From the NCBI GenBank assembly GCA_964057225.1, contig OZ059897.1:7192001-7256000 (forward strand): a DNA stretch of 64,000 nt, in the 5' to 3' direction. Under the pieces are notes generated by a model. It made no database searches. It worked only from the letters and a program-made list of their open reading frames with translations, and had not been told where the DNA came from. The position numbers were made by a program, and so were the translations under genes. This DNA is from Auanema rhodensis (Eukaryota; Animalia; Nematoda). This document shows positions 5,336 through 24,754 of the stretch, in pieces (the stretch's first letter is position 1; each line of letters opens with the position of its first letter).

Positions 5336-7719
5336 ATGATTTTACGATTGGTATCAATATTACTAATATCAATATTACCTATATTCGTTGCGCAATTTGT
5401 TCCAATAGACAGGTAAGAAACTCTATGTTCGTGTTATTTCTATTCAAATAAGCATATATGAAGCCATACTGTTTATTCTTTTATCATAACTCTTTAGAGA
5501 TTTAACTACAATTGCTCCACCTATAGCTAGAGCTCATCGAGATTTTGTACTTGGACGACGGAGAAGCCATCATCATCACCATCATGTGTGAGTTTCAAGT
5601 TGTTTCCATTCAATTTAAGCTTAAAAAGTGAACATTGATCAACATCAATATCATCATTATTAGTTTTTGGTCAAGGTTATGTTGCAACATTACGTATTCC
5701 CAATATTATCTTCTGAACAATTGCATTTGCAGAGCTCGTCATCCAACTTCGGAACAGAGTCGTAAGGCTCATGAAAGTGAAGCAGCTTACTTACGCAAGC
5801 TTGAAGCTTATGAGGAACAAAACGAAAAATTTGAAGAACTTAGAAAAGAAACTCATGACAAATACTATGAGGACTATTTCAATCGTATGCGAGCTTATGC
5901 AGTTGAAACGCATATCAGGCGGTAAGCTCACGAACCTGTCTAAGCGCCATACTATTAATATTTTATCACAGGTACAATCAACTCTTGCAACAACAACAAG
6001 CTGAACGAGCTCGTTTTTCAAAAGTTATGAGCGAATTCGGAGTACGAGAGGAAGACGTAATTCGACAAGTTGGTAGTGGAGCTCAGTTCGTACCAACACA
6101 ACCAGAACCTGTTAACGTACCATCGTAAGTTATCTTTGCGTTCACAATTTATCTTTTTATCATTTGTGTTCTTGTAGAAATCCTTTCGGTGACGTCAAAA
6201 ATGTCCATGACATCATGGACGGGCCAGCTTCAACAAAGCCACGTGCGGGAGCTGTTCCTGTTCTAGAGGTTTGAACTGAAATGTTCTCTTGATGCTTGAT
6301 TAAAGAAAAGCTGTTTTTGAACCCAAAGCAAAGCATATTTCATTCGAACAAGGACAAATCTATCAATGTTTTAGAGATAACTTGAACTTAACTTCCCCCC
6401 TCTGAGAATTTTTTCTTTTTTTTTCTTTCGTTTTAGCGATAGGCGGAACTAGCTACCTACCATACAGCTATGCTACATCAAGAATGAAAATCAATCATAA
6501 AGAAAACAAAATAAAAAATAATTTATTAGTATTGAATGCAACCGATCATAATTGCTTAAAACATAAAAATGACACGTAAATACCAGCTTACGTGACACGT
6601 GAATAACGTAACCCACGTCACGGTAGCTTATACTCACGTGATATGCTAATTCGATTTCAGCCTCAACCTCCGTCAAATATTGAGCCACGTCCAGAGAATC
6701 GTGATGTTCATAGAAAAGCTATAGCTTTAGAAACATTATGTGCAAAGTAATTATATGATATTATATAGTTAAACTTATAATTATTTTAGATTCATAAATA
6801 CAGTTCGTCAACATTGTACTGGAAATAAGACAGAAGAAGCATATGTTAAGAAATGTGAAGGATATTTTAAAGTTTATATTAATTATATTAATTATAATAT
6901 TAAAAAAATATATTATAGGATTGTGGTGGAATGATACCAAAAGCTGATCCATTATATAGTATTGCTAATTCATTCAGTTCACAAGTTGGAATTAATGTTG
7001 CTACTGTAGGAGTAAAGGTATAGAAGAAAGAAGAAGATTCTTCTCTAATTGTCATTTCAAGGGAATTCCTTATTATCCAATTAATGAAGAAGGTGCTATT
7101 GAAGTAGGAAGAGAGATTGGAGTACCATTTGGTTCATGGGGTGGAGGATATACTGATCATGCTGGTGTTCGGTTCGTAACAATAAGCTTTTTTAGTTTTT
7201 TTTTCCAAATTGTAAACTGCTAATTGTAATTGCAATTTCCTTTCTAGAGATTATTGGTCACAAACTACAGAAGTTGGAGCTAATTGGTATGAAGGAAAGT
7301 ATGGTTATAAGGGTGGATGGAGTGTGCCTCTTGTTCAATCATTAGGAATTGAAGGAGATACTCATGCTGTGGTTAGTTAAATGGTTCAACTTTTTGAATA
7401 TCAAAAATATAATTTCAGGTATCAGTACCAGTGAAGCCTGGCGAGCTAGGTAAACCTATCGGAGTTGATGTTGGCGGAGGTGTTGGACCATACTATCAGC
7501 AAAATCAGCATGTTGGAGTTGATTATATGAATGGCAATGTAAGAAGAAAATACATAAGATGAAATCAATGAAACACAAAACTTAATTATAAAAGATACTT
7601 GCCTATTTGAATTTCAGGTTGGAACAAATTTCGGCGTTGGTGTACCATTTGCCGGAGTAGGAGTCAACACAGGAATCGGTATCAAGTTTCCATCAGTTAA
7701 TGATGTGATTGGAAAATAG
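5336..7719 (+). CDS. Secreted protein: His tract, charged helical region, one 4-Cys module, Gly/Val/aromatic-rich C-terminal domain; 12 exons (5336-5412, 5498-5587, 5733-5921, 5972-6124, 6178-6268, 6661-6746, 6790-6871, 6919-7017, 7062-7171, 7248-7371, 7419-7538, 7618-7719)
   Basis: Unpaired acceptor (ttttttcacag) before ATG 5336; signal peptide MILRLVSILLISILPIFVA; all 11 introns are GT-AG with matching phases; ends VGTNFGVGVPFAGVGVNTGIGIKFPSVNDVIGK*. Largely missed by the ORF track. Confidence 0.85.
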
Positions 7720-12778: not shown

Positions 12779-15700
12779 CTAAGCAAGAGCATCATAGTTC
12801 TCGGACTCCTGAATGAGATTTTAGTATGTAAAATCATTTTATACTATATTCTATTTACCTCTTCTATATCTGCAAACCGTGATTTCTTTTTGAGTGCAAG
12901 AGAATCGGGTGAGCACAAGTTTTTGATTTCTAACAAGCTTTCGCGAGTTCGCACAAGAGATTGCTCATCAAATTTGTCGGCACCATACTCGTTGAGTACG
13001 TCCTTCTTCTTTGGAACTTGTCGGATATCTTCTTTACTGAACATGGGTTCATGTTGTTTTTCTTTTCTACTATCTAAAACCAGATGCAAATAAGCGTTAA
13101 GTCAAAACTTATATGTAGCTTACCATCACCTTCGAATACCCAATCTTTCTCACATTGTTCACCTACTAATCGCATGGAGTTGCAACTATTGTTTTGCTCT
13201 TCACGGAATTTCATGGCTTTAGTAGTCTAAATTGTATTCTTAATAACTAGTAAATCCTATCGAATACAAACCACGTCATTGAAATAGTTTCGCAATTCTT
13301 CAGCTTCATCTGTTATGCTGGTTTGTGCTCGAACATTAGCTGATTCTCCAGTCTGGAAACAATTCAAATAATTTTAAATTTAAATTTTTAAAAATACCTC
13401 AATGAGTGTTATTTGATTTCGAAGATCAGTATCTGCTAAGGAATATATATTGTCTCTAAATGCTCCATATGTGCTGATTAACTGCTTGTTACAGTCTTCA
13501 AGAACTTGAGATCCAGTATTGTTTTTGTCTGTGACCGTTTTTCTAAATCAGGTTTGTCAATAAAACTGTTGGTTTCAAATACTACTCACGTTAATTCGCC
13601 CGTGTTTGATGCCACACATTGAGCATTGACTTCTATTTCGCCGATAACTTCCAAAATGTTATCTTCAGATCCTTGTACTGTACTTCTTAGTCGTTCATCG
13701 ATGTCAGCACAATTATCAACAAGATTAACGTTAAGTTCTTGAAGTTTGCTTAAATTCAATAATATTAGTTACATTTAAAGTTATTTTGTTCAAAACCTAG
13801 TTTTTGTATCCACAGCAGATTTGAACGTGCTCAAAGCTTGCATTCCTTGTTCATAAAACGATTTAAGCATATTCTCCATTAAAGCTTTATGCTCATCTGC
13901 AGTTGTACTCATGCTCTGTATTACATTATTGTGTTCTTCAGCATATTTTCCAACGTGTTCACGGTTATCAGCAACCTGAAATAATATTCAATTACCCGAG
14001 AAAAGAATTACTTGAAACATACAATAGCTTCTGAATCTTTAACTAAATCATTTGTTAAAGATTTTATTCGATTAACCATATCATTAAAACTATTTGCCAA
14101 TTCAGATGTTTTTACAGCATGTGATTCAATCGCTTGTCCAACCTACAATCAGATATCTGATTTTGTATTAGATAAGAGTCAACTTACATCGGTGAAAAGT
14201 GAGCTCATTGTCTTGGATTTCTCGGCGACGATAGTTTGAATATTAGATTCAGTTGTTTCAACACTGTTTTTGATATTAGTGTTGAATTGATTAATATTAG
14301 AGCTAACATTCTTTAGAATAGAAGTAATTACTTCAAGATCAGCTTGAATTGAAACTTGGAATGATTCTGCAACAAGGTCATAAGGTCATAATTGAAAGCA
14401 AGACGTTTTCGTGTTTTTTGCATACCTGAGTCAATCAACTTATTTTGGGCGGATTGTGATATGTTATCAACAAAATTACTTGCAACATCAACTGACATCG
14501 ACAAATAGCTATACAACTGCAATGTTCAGAATACATGTTTTTTATTAAAAAAATTAAAAAACAAATACCTTTGCAAAAGAGCCGAATACAAGATCCTTAT
14601 TAGTACTTGCTAACTGGACCATTTCCTCGTCTTTTTTCCATAATTCTTCGATCAGTGCACGTTGCTGTCCAGTGACTTTACATGCCTACGAATTCATTAA
14701 AATTTATTCAAGTTTGTGAAGTTTAAAAAAAACCTGTTTAGCTTGCTGATGACAGCTCTTAGCTACTTCACTGAAATCATCTAGAGCATACTGATAAGCA
14801 CTGAGTTTTTGCTGGCATATTGCTAAATCCTTTTTGGTTAAATCGAGTTCTTGAACACGTGTTTCAAGCTTAGATTGCAATCTCTTATTAGTTTGGTAAG
14901 CAGCCATATATTGTTCATCCATCATTTCCATATCTTCGATAAACTGAAAGAGAAATTAATTATAACAACCTTTTGAATCCAAGTTGACATACCCTTTGAA
15001 GCTTGGCTACCATAATATCCATTTTAGCAGCGAGTTCATTCTTGACAGCAATATCCTTCTCCATATCACTGAAATAAGCTTTGGTTGATTGAAAAGAAGA
15101 TACCAAACACTCACTTATAAGTTTCCTCACTAATGAAAATTCCATTTTTCTCCCGAGCCATTCGCAAATCTCGTCGAAGTTTTTCAATTTCAATGTTATA
15201 TTCCTAATATAATAGATAATATTCACAAAAACAAAATTAATTAATACCTTAAGCAATGCTTTTCTGGAAACTTTTTGATTGCATTCAGGATGATTGCGAA
15301 TAGATTTAGCTCTCATAGCATAATCCAAAGTTGAAATAGATTCTTCATAGTTCGATTGTGATGGAGACATTGTGGCAATAATAGCTGTGATTGTGGAACC
15401 TCCTAGCGAATCTTGGAGAATTCTAGTCAATTTTGACTCTCTGAAAACTCCAATTAACAAGGAAAAGCCTCCTTAAAGTGTACCTGTATGGGATATGAGG
15501 CCCAGATGATGTTAAAGCCGTGATAACTCTGCTAAGAGTTAACAAAGACTGGTTGATATTTCCTGTAAATAGCATATTTTTTCAAATTTGAAACGAAACT
15601 TGTTACGCACCTGCTTCTTTCATTCGTTTTCCCTCAGCCCCAGAACGGCCTATATTCTCAGAACCAGCAAGATCGACAAGATTCAATTTGCCCTATGAAC

Positions 15701-16704
15701 AAATCTTATGTATGAGTTACAACTTTGCTATAAACTTACGGTTTTAACTAATTCTTCACCGCTTTCAGTATTTTCTCTTATTACAACAGAAATAGTAAAA
15801 ATAGAATGAGATCTACTAGAAGCGGTGTTCATCAGAGTTGCAGCTGTAGTTCTCTTATCTGTTCCTCTTTTAAGAATATCATAAACTTCTTTACGAGAAC
15901 GAACGGGAAGTTCTTCAGCTCCAGATACAATGACTGCTCCCTTGAATCAGATCATATAACCATTAACATCTGAATGATGGCTTACCTTCTTTGAAGGATC
16001 ATCGAATATACGCAATTTCTCCCTCTCTTCAGTACCTGATGATAGCAAATCATATATTTCCTCGTTGTATAATTCCAAATATGATACTCGAACGGAATAC
16101 TCTTCAACTCCCTGCAATATCATATTGAACAGTTAAAGGGATGAAACCACAAAATTACAGCATTTTCCAATTCGGCAAAGATAAGTTCAACAGCTCGGGG
16201 AGTCATTCCTGTGTGCACATCAGCTTCAGCAGAATCAGATTCTGCATGCCCTCCTTCCATTGTATAAGTTTTACCTGTTCCTGTTTGACCATAACTAAAT
16301 AAATATATTGCAATGAATTAATCAGAATCAGAACTAACGCGAAGACTGTGCAGTTGAATCCAGCAAGAACTTTTTTAACTTGAGGCATACACACATTTTC
16401 GAAAACATCAGATTGTGTTGAAGATGGAGGATAAACCTAAAGGCAAAGAACAGTACGATTGTCAAACAAATTTTCAAAATTACGTAGTCAAATGGTCCGA
16501 ATTGTTTGTTCTTACAAGATATAAGCTTAGTTATAGTATCGGCTTTAACAACATTTTGACTTTTAGCCCTCTCCTCTTCATTTAGTGGACTAAAAGAAAC
16601 AAAATACCAAAGAAAAACTAACAATCATACCGAACTCTTACTGCAACAAGAACATTGAGCTTCTCTGATGAATTGCTGCCTTTTCTGGGCTTGGTATTAA
16701 TCAT
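12779..16704 (-). CDS. bmk-1: Kinesin-5 (BimC/Eg5 family) motor with coiled-coil stalk, many short introns
   Basis: N-terminal motor motifs [126 protein letters not shown] (kinesin-5 neck). Acceptor ttttag lies just before ATG 16704. Confidence 0.93.
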
Positions 16705-16901: not shown

Positions 16902-18687
16902 ATCTATAGCCAGTGGTATTGCCCCTGCATATGTGAGAAGATGAACATTAGATAGATATAACCATCATCTTATGAACAATGTGAACTTATAAAGTTTATC
17001 GAAAAAGAAACGTATGAGAGTAATACGAGCCTTTTCACAAGAGTGTACTTTAAGTGTTTTACAATAAGTTTAATTGTGTCTATTACCGTACTCCTCATTA
17101 ATTTACTAAATAAAAATCTAAAAATTTATTTTTTTAAATACTAATAAGATATTAATCTTTATTCTTAAATACATTTTCAAATACATATTTCGGAATAACC
17201 CTGGCTTTCAATTCAATTTTTTCCTGAATGTTTAGTAAAGCGGTTGCATTCATTCTTCTATCGTTAATTTTTTTTTCTTCGGAAATGTGGAACTTCATTA
17301 ATTTGTTCTTCTTGCTATGAATACGTTTTCAAATTAAATAAGAAAATTCTATGTAATCACTTCATGGAGCCACATGTTTCATCTATTTTTGAACTTGTAC
17401 ATTTAATTAATTAAAACAAAATTGTTCATGAAAGACTCGTGGTAAGTACAAAGGCATGATACATTTGTAAACTTCAATATCGGTGTGATATTTGAAAAAA
17501 AAAAACAAAAAAATTAATAAAAGAAGGAAATTTTTGCTCGAATTGAACAACTTTATTATCACAGGACTAGTTGAAAATAGCATAATCGAGTATGATAAAT
17601 CTACGAAGAATAGGTGAGTGGAAGAGAAATATAAAAGAAAGAAGAAACTTAAAAGATAAAGTGGGAAATACAAGAAAAAAACAGTACAGAGTGCATATAA
17701 AGCCATGCAATTAAAAAAAACATGAAAAATGAAAAAAAAAAACAAAATAAGTATAAGTATAGAAAAAGCTCAGCTTATAAATGAAGAAAATTATGATAAT
17801 ATTTTCATCAGATGATGTAATGATGAATGATGTGAATGACAGCTAAGTATAAATGCTGAAAAAGCATATAAGTATCATCATCATTATCAACATCATACAT
17901 GAAAATAGATGATAAAGCAATTAAGTCAAAGGGGGAGGGAGGGGGGGGAATAAAAGTAAGAAGCAATCAACTAATGAAAAAAGATTCGAAAATAAAGCAA
18001 GTGCATTCATAGATTACTAAAATCATTAAATACATCACACATATATATATATATATATAGATTGGAAAAAAAAAGTTTCAAAAACAGAAAATACGGTTTA
18101 GGAAAAGGAAGAAGAGTGAGTGAAGAGAAGCTGCATGAAGGAAGATAATCCATTTCTTGAGCTTGTCTTCGAAGTGCTGGTGAAAATGTCTGTGACAATT
18201 AGAAGCTGCTCTTTCCTTTATATCGAAATTACTTAAAAACACATAATCGAACATCATATGTTGATCTTCACATATGATATAAGCATGTGTATTAATGCAA
18301 TTTTGAAGGATTTTGATCTTATAGATCGACTTATTATGCTATATGTGATAGCTGACACTGTCAGTCTATGTACATATATACGAGCGAGAACAAATTAATT
18401 TAAAAGAACAAAATACAAAAAAATTATAAATCATATACTTTAAAATCAAATAAATTAGCTAATTATCTGTTATACTCTGGTCACAACACTTAGAATTCGG
18501 GTCGTTCCCGTGTAAGTTTCTTATATTGAATGTGATGGTGAGAGAACATAGAGATTGTATATGATGCTATTATTAAGATTATTATGATTCCGAAGGACCA
18601 TTGTGTATCGTAGTGTTGAAGGAATTGTGGATGAGTGCGTATGATTGCTTCGAAGCGTATTTCGTTGCCGAAGTATTCAAAGGTGTT

Positions 18688-21600
18688 TTAGATGCCTGAT
18701 TTCGAGAAAGAAACCCGTAGATGAGCATTTTCAGCCAACTTATAGTTGTGCATATGAATTAAGCCTTCAATAGCTGTTTCGACATCATCCAATTGCATCA
18801 GAGCCATTTTGTGGTCTTTTCTGAAAAAAATAAATTATGTGATTTCAGATGAAATGTTTCAATTTTTTATCAATTCATTTCATCTAATTCTCATGGAATT
18901 TTCAATTTGAATTATAAAAAGGAAAAACATATATGGAATACGTTAAAGATTAATTATAAATGAAACCTACGGGAAGAATTTGAATGCTTTCACGGAAAAT
19001 CCATTGTTTTCAAATGCCTCTGTCAATGTCTGTTCTGATACATTTGGTGGAATATTGGATAGATGAAGTGTTGCAGATGGTGGATATATATTCATATAGT
19101 TTTTACTGAAAGAAAAAAATTATATTTGAAAATAAAGAGAGAGAGAGAGAGAGAGAGGGAAAATTTCATGTTTGATCACTCACCTTCCAGGCTTCTTAAA
19201 GCGATGTAATGGAGAATGAGAGTAGTCCCTAGTAAGACCAGCATCTGGTTGTCCTATAAATAATATAAATAATATAATAACATTATAGTTAATAATAGAA
19301 ATTAATTTAATTTATATATTTGAGTTTTACTATATATTATCTTTGCTTACCTTCTTTAGGCATCTGAACATTTGTATGCTTGGATGGAGCCACACGTATA
19401 ACTTTATCGTGCCAACGAACTTTATCCAAATGTTGTAAGGCTGAAAAATAAGGAATAAAACTTTAAATAAAAAGAAGAATGAAAATAAATACAACCGATT
19501 GTGCCGTTTGCAATACTATCAATGAAAGTTTGACGTGACTTTTCACGTGTAATTAACGTTTTATGCCAATTGATTAAGCTATGCCAGAGAAAGTTTAATA
19601 TAAACTCGAAAACGAATGAAAAATAAAAATAAATCACGTTTTACTTCTTGTGATTTGCAATAACGACTGTGCAGGAAAAAGATATGGAAGTGTTAAAACA
19701 GAAAAAAAAGCTTGAAACTACATACCTAATTGAGCTTGTTGAGGCTCACTATATTGAATTAAGGCATTATCTTTCTTATTATAAAGAATTTTTACACGAA
19801 GGACATCTCCATAAACCCCTAAATATAGAAGAATAATTAGTTTTCAATCAAAAAATGTCAAGGAAAAACAGAAAAATTGAAAAACTATAGTATGACATAC
19901 CGAATAGAGTGAAAAGAGCATCGGGTGATACTTTCTGAAAAATAAAAACTATAATTCCAATAATACTATTAATTCAAATTATATGAATTTTTAACTAAAT
20001 AAGCTCGTTTAGACAAGATATTTCATCAAAATACATTTAAATTTTGGATGAATATTCAATAGAAAATCTGATGAAAATTCTATATGAACTTGATTGTACA
20101 ACTTAGTTTGGTAGCATTTTTTTTTCGTTGTTGGAAAAGAAGCATCATTGTGATAGTAAAACTTACATTTTCATCCAAATTTGAGACCAGAATAACTGGT
20201 GTTAATCCTAACACATTAATAGGAAAACGAAGAGCATTAATGGCATTTGCTGGTCCTAAAGCGCTTCCGGTTAAAGCTCCAAGACTTGGTAAATAGGGTG
20301 AAAGAGTAGTTTGACTGGTGTCACCTAAAATAGATTTATAAATAAAATTGAATTAAAAGATTGATTAAGATTAAGGAAGCAGAAATAGGCTTATTCTCAA
20401 ATGTGATTATCATCATCATTCTCATTATGTCATTTGGAACCTCACCCTTTCTACACATATTACTCTGTGCTGCCTCCCCCCCCCCTTCCCTTCATCGTTG
20501 CAGCATTACTTCCCCTACAACTTGATACATATCTCACCATCTTTCAATAAATAGCTATTTCTTCTATATATATATACATATATATACGTTGTGTTTAATT
20601 AAGAATTTTCATGGCTGATTGTTAAAACATAACTATTTCTATTTATCGAAAATATAAATTATATATTGAATTGATGCATATTTAATTATAAAATCATGCG
20701 CATTTATTTTTTAGTTTTATAGATATATAGTTAATCGAATAACTGACCAGCAGCTGCGACCTGTTGTTGAAGGAAAGCTGCAGCCGGATTGGCAGCTCCG
20801 AAAGCAAATGAGTATGGAGAAGCTGCTGGTAGAAGCGAATGAAGTGCTGGAATTCCACCGGCTGAAATGAATTATAATGAATGAAGAGAGCTCCAGAAAC
20901 TGATGATGGAAATGCGGACAAAGCAAGAAGCTGCATAACTAGATGTGGAAAAGAAAAGAAAGATACATATAGTATATAGATATATCGATATATATATAAC
21001 GGCTATTACTACTACTTACTTAGTCCCAACGTTTGCTCAATAGTTATTTCGCCGGAGGGCAACGATGGATTCGTATAATCTCGGCTTTTGTCGTTATTAT
21101 ACTTAACATTCAATGTGCTCAATTTGCTATAGTCAATACGTAATGTACAGCATCTGAAACAAAAAAAAAATTAAATTTCAGATTATCCAAGATGAAAGAG
21201 AAAAGATGACTAATACAGATAGACGTCTATGAGAGACAATGAGTAAAAATGAGAACAATAGGAATTACATTTGAACTTACCCATTGTACACGTTTTGATT
21301 CTCTAAATTCTGTTTTCCAATTTGGGCAGAAGTAGCTTCGTTCATTTGAATAAGAGCTTGGAATGTATCTTAAAAATAAAAATAAAATTTAATTCAAAAA
21401 GTAAAGATTAAGAGAGAGAGAGAGAGAGAGTCAAGATATCAAGCCAAACATAGGGCGAATCCAAATGATCTCCCATCATCTCACATGTCTAATGACAAAA
21501 CCATTTTCTTGATGACATCAAATATAATATACACTATATCATATACTATACTAACTCTTACTTCATTCTTTCATTTCTCTTTCAAAAATTTTAAAAAAAT

Positions 21601-22342
21601 TGAAGGAAAACGCAAAGAAATAAAAACAGAAATGAAGTGAAAGATGAAGATATCATACAGTGATAGTTAAGGCATTATAATAGTCAAGAAAAGAGTTTTT
21701 TTAAAATATAATTATAATAAAATGTAAAAGTTTGATGTTGTTATAAATTACTGAATTAGCTTTAATTCCATAATATTCAGTGCTGATAATAAGTTGTTGA
21801 GTGATGATTTTTGGTAAAAAAAAAGTCTTCACACATGTAACATACACACATATAATTTATGAAAGTTTAAAAGAAACTTAACTTGAAATATTAGAGCATA
21901 AAGTATATGAAAAACTTACTATTTTTGTTGAAAGTGATGATTCGCAGGACTTTGCCATAGCGGGAGAAGAGCTAGAAAGGTGAAGATAAGAGATAGAAAA
22001 GATACAGTAATCGAGTTAGAAACTAAAGGAAATATGGGGAAGATCTGATAGGTAATAGCTTTGAAAGCTCTACTTGAGAGATCTAACTTGATATATCTAT
22101 GTCTATTTAGCTGTCAAAAAGAATTAAAATTAACTTTTTTTTCCGGCATCTTCTCTCTCTAAGCTGAGCTTACACATGCTCACAAGTTATCTTACCCCCA
22201 TCCCTATTTTTCCGTTTTCAGAAGTGAATTTTTTCGTTTTCATTGTTATTACATGCAATTTTCATATAATTTCAATTAAGAAGACGAATCAAACTCAACA
22301 ATATGTATAATATTAGATAGATAGAAAGATAGATAAAAAGAT

Positions 22343-22404
<62 letters not shown>

Positions 22405-24754
22405 AGAAAGAGAGAATGTTATATAGACAGTAAGACACACAAGCTATTAAACGGGTCTTTAATGATTTGTCTCAATAATTTCCGCAATTTTTTACATCCT
22501 TTAACGCTCATTCTATGCATCTAATATCTATGTTTCATGCAAATTTACTGATAAAATGAGTCAAATATGATAGAAAATGATGATAATGGATAGAAAAATT
22601 GAAATCAAGCAAATGTATAAACACAAACAAACAAGTGAATGTGAATTGAAAATCAAAAAATCAAAGATTTCTTTCGTTTTTCTCCTCCATCATCATCATC
22701 ATCATTTCATCAGCTTCTTATTCTTTATCTTATTCTATTTTCCATCTAGATAGACGATAGTAGAAGCTATTGCTTTAACTTACTGAATGAAGAACATCTA
22801 ATGTAACAGGATAGACCATATTCTCAATGATAACCCGTAAGACGCTGCTAGGTTGTTGCTGAGTTCCACCCGTAATATCCAATTGAGATACTGAGGAACT
22901 TCCAGCTGTTCCTGAACCATTCTGTAGCACGTGATTCACCTGCAATAACGATAAGATTACTTGAAGATTCCTCATATAAGTTATAAGTTTGATTTTGCTT
23001 TCAACTTCATGTTTACCTTCTCTCTCATTTTCCCTCTTTCCCACCCCTCTCTATCTTTCTCTTCCCTCTAATCTACATACCACATACTTTTGTCTTTGGT
23101 TGAGCTTACTCAACTAGCCGAACAGCTAATTTATCTTCCTATAGTATTCCAAGCACGGTTTTTCAATTTGTTTTTTCTTAGCAAATAAGAAGAATTTCAT
23201 ATTATTCACGGATTATAACATCTATTTGACTGAATTCTTCCTCCTTTCTTCTCAAAAACTAGCCACAATTATCAAAAATATAATTAAGAAACTTAACTAT
23301 ACTATATGAAGATATTGCCATTTATAATTTTGTTTATTAAAATAAAAATAATTGTTTTTCTATTACGTTTATCTACATTTTTTATTTCTTCACTACTATT
23401 TCATCTTTTTCTTCTTCTTCTTTTTCTGGTCTATCTTCCTCTTTTTCTTCTTCTTCTTCTTCTTCCTCATCATCATCATTCTCCCCATCCTCCTCTTCCT
23501 TTCAACCCAATCGTCACAACCGTAGAATCCTTCATTTTTTCTATTTCTCTCTCTCTCTCTCTATCTATTTATCTCTCTCTCTCTTCCATAACCCTTTTGT
23601 GTTACAATTTGCTGCTCGCATTAAACGTTTTCCTGTTTTTGTGTCTTCCAAGATTTTCCTAACTAGTCACTCTATAATAAGAAACTTGTTTTTTGCTACA
23701 AATAACATATTCAATTGAAATACTATTCAAAAATTATAATTATATTATAGCAAAATTCATAATCAAGCTTCAATTCTTCTTCAATATAAGCATCAACAGC
23801 AGTTTAGTATGCTTATACTCATCTGCTGAATGGTGAGGATGGATACTATCGAGCTATATCTGCTTGATGGGTGATGATGGCACACTTCGTAGACCCAGAT
23901 ATGAGAGTTGAAGAGAAACCTCCGAAGTTTTCTTCTATTCTTCCACAATCTTCACAACTTTCTACCCCGAAGTGCGATTAGGTGTGATCATTCAGACGGA
24001 ATAATGTGATTATCTTTCCGTGTGGCCAGATAACGTGAACCAAGGACTGTCAACTTGTGTCAGAGACGAATCTCATGGATCTCTCGACAACCCCCGATCT
24101 ATACGTAATCCGAATGGCGTGTCCTTATACACACACCTAACAGGGATAGCAACTATTCAGCTAATATACGCAACATGTTTTGGCAAACGAACGTTGATTT
24201 CAAACCTGATGTTCAACTCGAAAAGCATCGTACTGTTGGTACGCTTCAGACATCACCTGAGCAGCCATTCTCTTGGCTTGAACTGCCGTTGTGGTGTCGA
24301 GGGCGGTACACGCCGATCGCTTCGTTGTACTGTAGAGAAAGATAAGTCAATGAAGAATAATGAATGAACGAAATTGAAAATGTAATAGATTTAGAAAAAA
24401 AATTTAAATGAAGGGAATACTTGATCAGATTTTACGATTTAAGAGAATAAAAAATGAAAATTCTTCAATGAAAAACGAATAAGCCAATCGCTATGCAACT
24501 GAAAGCAGATAGTAGGAGATGAAGAAAAAAAGAAAAAATTAGTTAAAAATATTTATTGAGTTGATGAAACGGATGATGTTGATGAAGAAGTCTACTACTA
24601 CTGCTGGATACTGGAAGAATAGATGGAAGATCCTTGAGTATGAGCTAACCAATGTTGGATTACGTGTTAATGGCAACAAACAGACGTACATGAACACATA
24701 TAATGTGTTGGAGGTTAACTAGGAGCTCAGTTTGGATGACAAATAGAAGGAAAT

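Follow-up and report, generated by a model that had tools for sequence, protein, structure and literature searches.

Does the PTB gene of Auanema rhodensis carry the 34-nt exon that vertebrate PTBP1 and PTBP2 use to hold down their own expression, and if so, is it likely to be used in the same way? The question was raised by a first-pass annotation of a 64,000-nt stretch of genomic DNA (contig OZ059897.1, positions 7,192,001 to 7,256,000; referred to here as the window), in which a short exon of ptb-1 was read as a negative feedback switch shared with mammals. The mammalian precedent invoked for this reading, that PTBP1 exon 11 and PTBP2 exon 10 are 34-nt exons whose PTB-induced skipping leads to NMD, agrees with the work of Spellman et al. 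(2007; PMC1940037), who described PTB-induced skipping that yields an NMD substrate, with PTB dependence shown in HeLa cells. The switch is also already known in nematodes. Tomioka et al. (2016; Nat Commun 7:11645, PMC4876481) reported that exon 11 of C. elegans ptb-1 is a 34-nt cassette exon forming part of RRM3. Isoforms lacking this exon were stabilised in smg-2 mutants, with percent spliced in going from about 77.5 to about 65, and were not detected in ptb-1(gk347274); the authors concluded that PTB-1 represses exon 11 in its own transcript. They further stated that the position, size, and autoregulatory role of the exon are conserved with mammalian PTBP1/PTBP2. Read counts in C. elegans (5,439 joining exon 10 to exon 12 versus 28,758 joining exon 10 to exon 11) put skipping at about 16% (Tourasse et al. 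2017; PMC5741048). The window holds the expected copy of the exon of this known switch in one more species. The broader point, that the mammalian feedback switch is very old and that its length has been kept base for base across animals, was likewise made for C. elegans in 2016. The additions reported here are small: the exon and the same post-skipping stop are present in nematodes of clades I, IV, and V and in a wasp, a mosquito has the exon as well, and the pyrimidine richness of the flanks is not conserved.

The ptb-1 gene of the window

Exon mapping with canonical AG/GT borders placed a PTB gene with four RRMs on the minus strand of the window, and all of the gene features given below lie on that strand. 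A single open frame of 595 codons covering RRM1-4 runs through all mapped exons, 12 of which lie in 22939-18688 and six in 45358-43197. The upstream six encode the N-terminus and RRM1 (45358-45278, 44633-44535, 43879-43788, 43621-43525, 43474-43403, and 43286-43197) and are supported by the open frame that runs through them; their summed length of 531 nt matches the 532-nt upstream part of RNA contig X3. An intron of 20 kb (22940-43196) separates them from the exons for RRM2 and the following linker (22939-22784, 21971-21920, 21368-21281, 21153-21020, and 20861-20748), which were identified from RNA contigs and matches to the TIGR01649 profile. Next comes exon A (20324-20167, 158 nt), which was defined by its splice sites and RNA contigs, covers linker and the start of RRM3, and ends in phase 0. 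It is followed by the 34-nt exon, called exon B here, and by exon C (19818-19726, 93 nt), which encodes the RRM3 core and was placed by RNA contigs and by alignment to PTBP1/2 RRM3 and to TIGR01649. The end of RRM3, a further linker, and RRM4 are encoded by exons D (19440-19351), E (19253-19184), F (19105-18971), and G (18820-18688). The normal stop codon, TAA at 18690-18688, is in exon G, and the 3' UTR (17713-18687) is covered by RNA contigs without a break.

The translations of four exons matched TIGR01649 (hnRNP-L/PTB/hephaestus family) in colinear order, at profile positions 182-223, 322-351 (exon C), 406-449, and 451-492 of 493. The E values of these matches ranged from 2e-18 to 1e-10; the profile and structure searches used single-exon translations, and the whole-protein cut-off of 287 bits is out of reach for any single exon piece. 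RRM3 matched the PTBP1/2 structures 4CQ1, 2MJU, 1QM9, and 2ADC; in the crystal construct of PTBP2 RRM3-4, exon C aligns to residues 26-55, and it aligns to the equivalent segment of PTBP1 as well. Across the C-terminal 418 residues, identity to the orthologues from Caenorhabditis tropicalis, Acanthocheilonema, Steinernema, Pristionchus, Halicephalobus, and Bursaphelenchus is 64-71%. Identity is 71% over 425 residues with the C. tropicalis orthologue, the closest of those retrieved from Caenorhabditis, 67% with the Pristionchus protein annotated as ptb-1, and about 50-53% with the Trichinella orthologue. By sequence, the gene is the nematode PTB (ptb-1), as indicated both by TIGR01649 and by the four RRMs together with the identity to orthologues.

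When the 44-residue RRM2 piece was searched against representative proteins, the top match was a 3,779-residue protein (P0001) with 16 separate matching stretches; this is a PTB-like giant made of tandem repeats or, alternatively, the result of merged gene models. The neighbor downstream of ptb-1, at about 14960-16700 on the minus strand, is presumably a kinesin motor, judging from the motifs in its ORF fragments.

Exon B and the consequence of skipping it

Exon B (19934-19901) is exactly 34 nt long; it encodes 11 residues of RRM3 and contributes the first base of the Gly codon that follows. It is bounded by the acceptor tttttcAG and the donor GTATGT. The splice sites and the alignment to PTBP1/2 and TIGR01649 agree with the first-pass annotation on the length of the exon, its coordinates, and its place in RRM3. 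When exon B is skipped in silico, 20167 is joined to 19818, and the sequence ...GAT GAA AAT is followed by GGG TTT ATG GAG ATG TCC TTC GTG TAA, a shifted frame that reads GFMEMSFV-stop. The premature TAA lies at 19794-19792 in exon C, is in frame only upon skipping of exon B, and has four exon junctions downstream of it. This is the outcome foreseen from the initial reading of the sequence, which had placed the stop four exons before the last, with D, E, F, and G still to come. The frameshift emphasized in that reading is real, but it is not a special property of exon B, as the length is not divisible by three in 9 of the 17 internal exons mapped (e2 to F). Exon B also contains the pyrimidine run that had been pointed out as a feature of the exon, CUCUUUUCACUCU. 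Because this run encodes the conserved residues A-L-F-T-L-F, and because synonymous positions within it vary freely between the species compared, it does not amount to independent evidence of a regulatory element.

RNA data were available from four RNA-like runs of one 2019 study, all in the form of assembled contigs, which were placed on window positions 17600-23100. The four runs hold 35% of the words of a mixed exon/intron stretch as compared to 84% for a stretch made up of the last two exons and the 3' UTR, which is the pattern expected of spliced RNA. The contigs confirmed all model junctions downstream of 22939, with 10 of them listed as joints. Both junctions of exon B, 20167 to 19934 and 19901 to 19818, were found in contigs of all four runs, and the exon is included in the main mRNA of each. 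The first-pass annotation had proposed the 20167-to-19818 junction as the diagnostic for skipping. This junction was absent from the contigs of the four RNA-like runs; contigs drop rare variants, and NMD would deplete the isoform. The contigs therefore report the inclusion form and say nothing about a minor, NMD-sensitive one. The exclusive recovery of the inclusion form would fit a reading in which exon B is a constitutive relic of inherited gene structure, with its regulatory elements lost and no PTB feedback operating through it, although the same inability of contigs to reveal rare isoforms weakens this argument.

In all four runs, a low-depth contig departs from the window sequence at 19619, within intron C-D. 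Its further letters (up to 136 in two runs and 12 in the other two) are absent from the whole 64-kb window, and it could be a chimera, another allele, or the product of an unknown splice partner.

Conservation of the exon and turnover of its flanks

PTB loci from Halicephalobus sp., Pristionchus pacificus, Trichinella murrelli, the mosquito Culex quinquefasciatus, and the wasp Polistes fuscatus were compared with the window; for C. elegans and mammals, the correspondence of the exons was taken from PMC4876481 and PMC1940037. A 34-nt exon encoding [K/M]V[T/S/N]PD[A/D]LFTLF plus the first base of a G codon was present in all five loci. In each of them, the preceding exon ends in phase 0 after ...VSNLxEx, and the AG/GT borders fall at identical places. 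An alignment of exon boundaries across nematode ptb-1 orthologues had been put forward as a check on the first reading of the locus, and the shared borders in Halicephalobus, Pristionchus, and Trichinella agree with it. Two mammal-type representative proteins (P0126 and P0146) were without a match to the pattern used for locating the exon region. Going by these genomic sequences, the 34-nt exon is common to nematode clades I, IV, and V and to two insect orders. Exon B is almost certainly orthologous to exon 11 of C. elegans ptb-1, as well as to exon 11 of PTBP1 and exon 10 of PTBP2 in vertebrates.

Skipping of the exon leads to a stop at the same ninth codon in the window and in Halicephalobus, Pristionchus, Trichinella, and Polistes; the exon after the 34-nt exon could not be located in Culex, and the comparison covers the other four loci and the window. 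The sequence R-V-K supplies this stop, through its Val codon (GTA or GTG) and its Lys codon. The preservation of the stop position across species argues against exon B being a mere relic. So does the phylogenetic bracket around A. rhodensis, with a working switch in mammals on one side and in C. elegans on the other.

The Val codon of R-V-K (window 19796-19794) is GTA or GTG in all five species, such that the shifted frame always yields TAA or TGA; with five species this comparison has low power, and further stops occur soon after in the shifted frame.

The sequences around the exon tell a different story from the exon itself. In vertebrates, the branch points of the two exons are distant (up to 389 nt upstream), their AG-free zones are long, and their flanks, which are conserved or ultraconserved, are dense in PTB sites (PMC1940037). 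Exon B resembles PTBP1 exon 11 and PTBP2 exon 10 in its 34-nt length and its place in RRM3 (Wollerton et al. 2004; PMC1940037), and the frameshift and premature stop that follow from skipping are the same, as NMD of the skipped product would be. On the other hand, its AG-free zone is only 12 nt and its flanks are ordinary A/T-rich intron. The upstream intron A-B (19935-20166, 232 nt) is 52% pyrimidine and 12% C, and it is poor in UCUU and CUCU. It contains 1.7 UCUU/CUCU/UUCU motifs per 100 nt, as compared to 0.7 to 16.7 (median about 4.4) in other ptb-1 introns, which is the third-lowest density among the 11 introns measured, and its AG-free zone is the shortest in the gene. The downstream intron B-C (19819-19900, 82 nt) is U-rich with few UUCU or UCUU motifs, and its 4.9 motifs per 100 nt are average for the gene. 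With these values, the U/C-rich flanking introns described in the first-pass annotation could not be substantiated: relative to the other introns of the gene, those flanking exon B show no enrichment for PTB motifs or pyrimidines. The CU-rich PTB elements and distant branch point that are the hallmark of the vertebrate exons, and that have been described for vertebrates only, were not found at exon B; such elements may not be what defines the exon in nematodes. Its acceptor is a perfect match to the nematode consensus UUUUCAG. In short, the local sequence carries nothing that marks exon B as regulated, and the case for its regulation rests on homology rather than on the local sequence.

A weak donor was considered as a mark of regulation and rejected; the donor of exon B fits the consensus at 6 of 9 positions, and those of the other exons fit at 6-8.

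In P. pacificus ptb-1, pyrimidines make up 76% of the intron that precedes the 34-nt exon (locus 6001-6225), and this intron contains 26 CUCU and 10 UCUU motifs in 225 nt. It is far richer in such motifs than the corresponding intron of Halicephalobus or of the window, where intron A-B has no CUCU and two UCUU in 232 nt. The Pristionchus intron is a candidate PTB landing pad, although not a conserved one, and its 26 CUCU motifs indicate that flanking CU elements turn over. Pyrimidine-rich flanks, the presumed mediators of repression, are thus not a conserved feature. The contrast with Pristionchus, along with the consensus acceptor, the 12-nt AG-free zone, and the low motif density of intron A-B, is what a relic that has lost its regulatory elements would be expected to show. 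However, the cis-elements of the C. elegans exon are unmapped, which makes the absence of CU tracts weak evidence, and taking this together with the conserved stop and the phylogenetic bracket, we regard it as unlikely that exon B is a constitutive relic.

Probable autoregulation of ptb-1, and the 20-kb intron

By homology with C. elegans and mammals, feedback through exon B would proceed as follows. Abundant PTB protein would repress the splicing of exon B in its own pre-mRNA, such that exon A is spliced straight to exon C, with a change of frame. Translation would then stop at the TAA at 19794-19792 after 8 foreign residues, upstream of four exon junctions and roughly 1.5 kb of RNA. The resulting A-C mRNA would be destroyed by the SMG/NMD pathway, and PTB levels would fall. 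Skipping, NMD sensitivity, and PTB dependence have all been demonstrated in C. elegans; for A. rhodensis, we infer that skipping occurs, that it depends on PTB, and that NMD degrades its product. The original proposal that the same feedback switch operates in this nematode is supported by homology to C. elegans and mammals, and we consider it likely that A. rhodensis PTB controls its own level in this manner. Several observations count against the model: an A-C junction is missing from the contigs, the flanks are not enriched for PTB motifs, the acceptor is consensus, and the donor is not weaker than those of other exons. Of these, the missing CU-rich flanks make the mechanism a little weaker.

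Skipping at a low rate might also be splicing noise, with NMD cleaning up the products and PTB having no control over the event. At 34 nt, exon B is close to the length where exon definition starts to lose efficiency, and the lack of clear PTB motifs beside exon B would be in keeping with such an origin. However, the skipped form went undetected in the C. elegans ptb-1 mutant, which argues for active repression in a related species, and we hold noise to be an improbable explanation. We favor PTB-dependent skipping of exon B. Many other splicing-factor AS-NMD loops rely on poison-exon inclusion or on intron retention in untranslated regions, whereas the PTB switch is the skipping of a coding micro-exon inside a domain. 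What it would share with the loops of SR proteins, hnRNPs, and the C. elegans hrpf-1 and rsp genes is the control of a factor's own level via unproductive splicing and NMD (PMC2265522).

The 20-kb intron between the RRM1 and RRM2 exons contains no ORF above 161 codons, and those present are of low complexity. It does contain 29 sense-strand (CU) runs of six or more copies, totaling 881 nt, versus 5 on the antisense strand. Such runs number 15 versus 3 in the 17.6 kb upstream of the gene, with only one in the 17.7 kb downstream; these counts take the gene flanks within the window as their background. CUCUCU is a preferred PTB-binding motif. One could imagine that the 34-nt switch exon was already present in the ancestor shared by nematodes, insects, and vertebrates, that the PTB-sensing elements have moved and possibly do not flank the exon here, and that the (CU)n tracts of the 20-kb intron sense or soak up PTB, but as a whole we view this scenario as a long shot. 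No description of a 34-nt exon in insects or of such (CU)n tracts was found in the literature searched.

The same intron also contains an alternative first exon. In three of the four runs, a loose contig end at 22942 was traced to 24206 inside the intron. The coding part of this exon (24206-24268) begins with an in-frame ATG at 24268-24266, has a donor after 24206, and is spliced to 22939, which predicts a PTB isoform lacking RRM1. C. elegans ptb-1 has both the 34-nt exon in RRM3 and an alternative first exon giving an isoform without RRM1; the predicted isoform parallels PTB-1b, which is made from a second promoter (PMC4876481). The two genes differ in layout, in that the 34-nt exon is the 11th in C. 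elegans and at least the 14th in the window, where the gene is far more fragmented and has the 20-kb intron.
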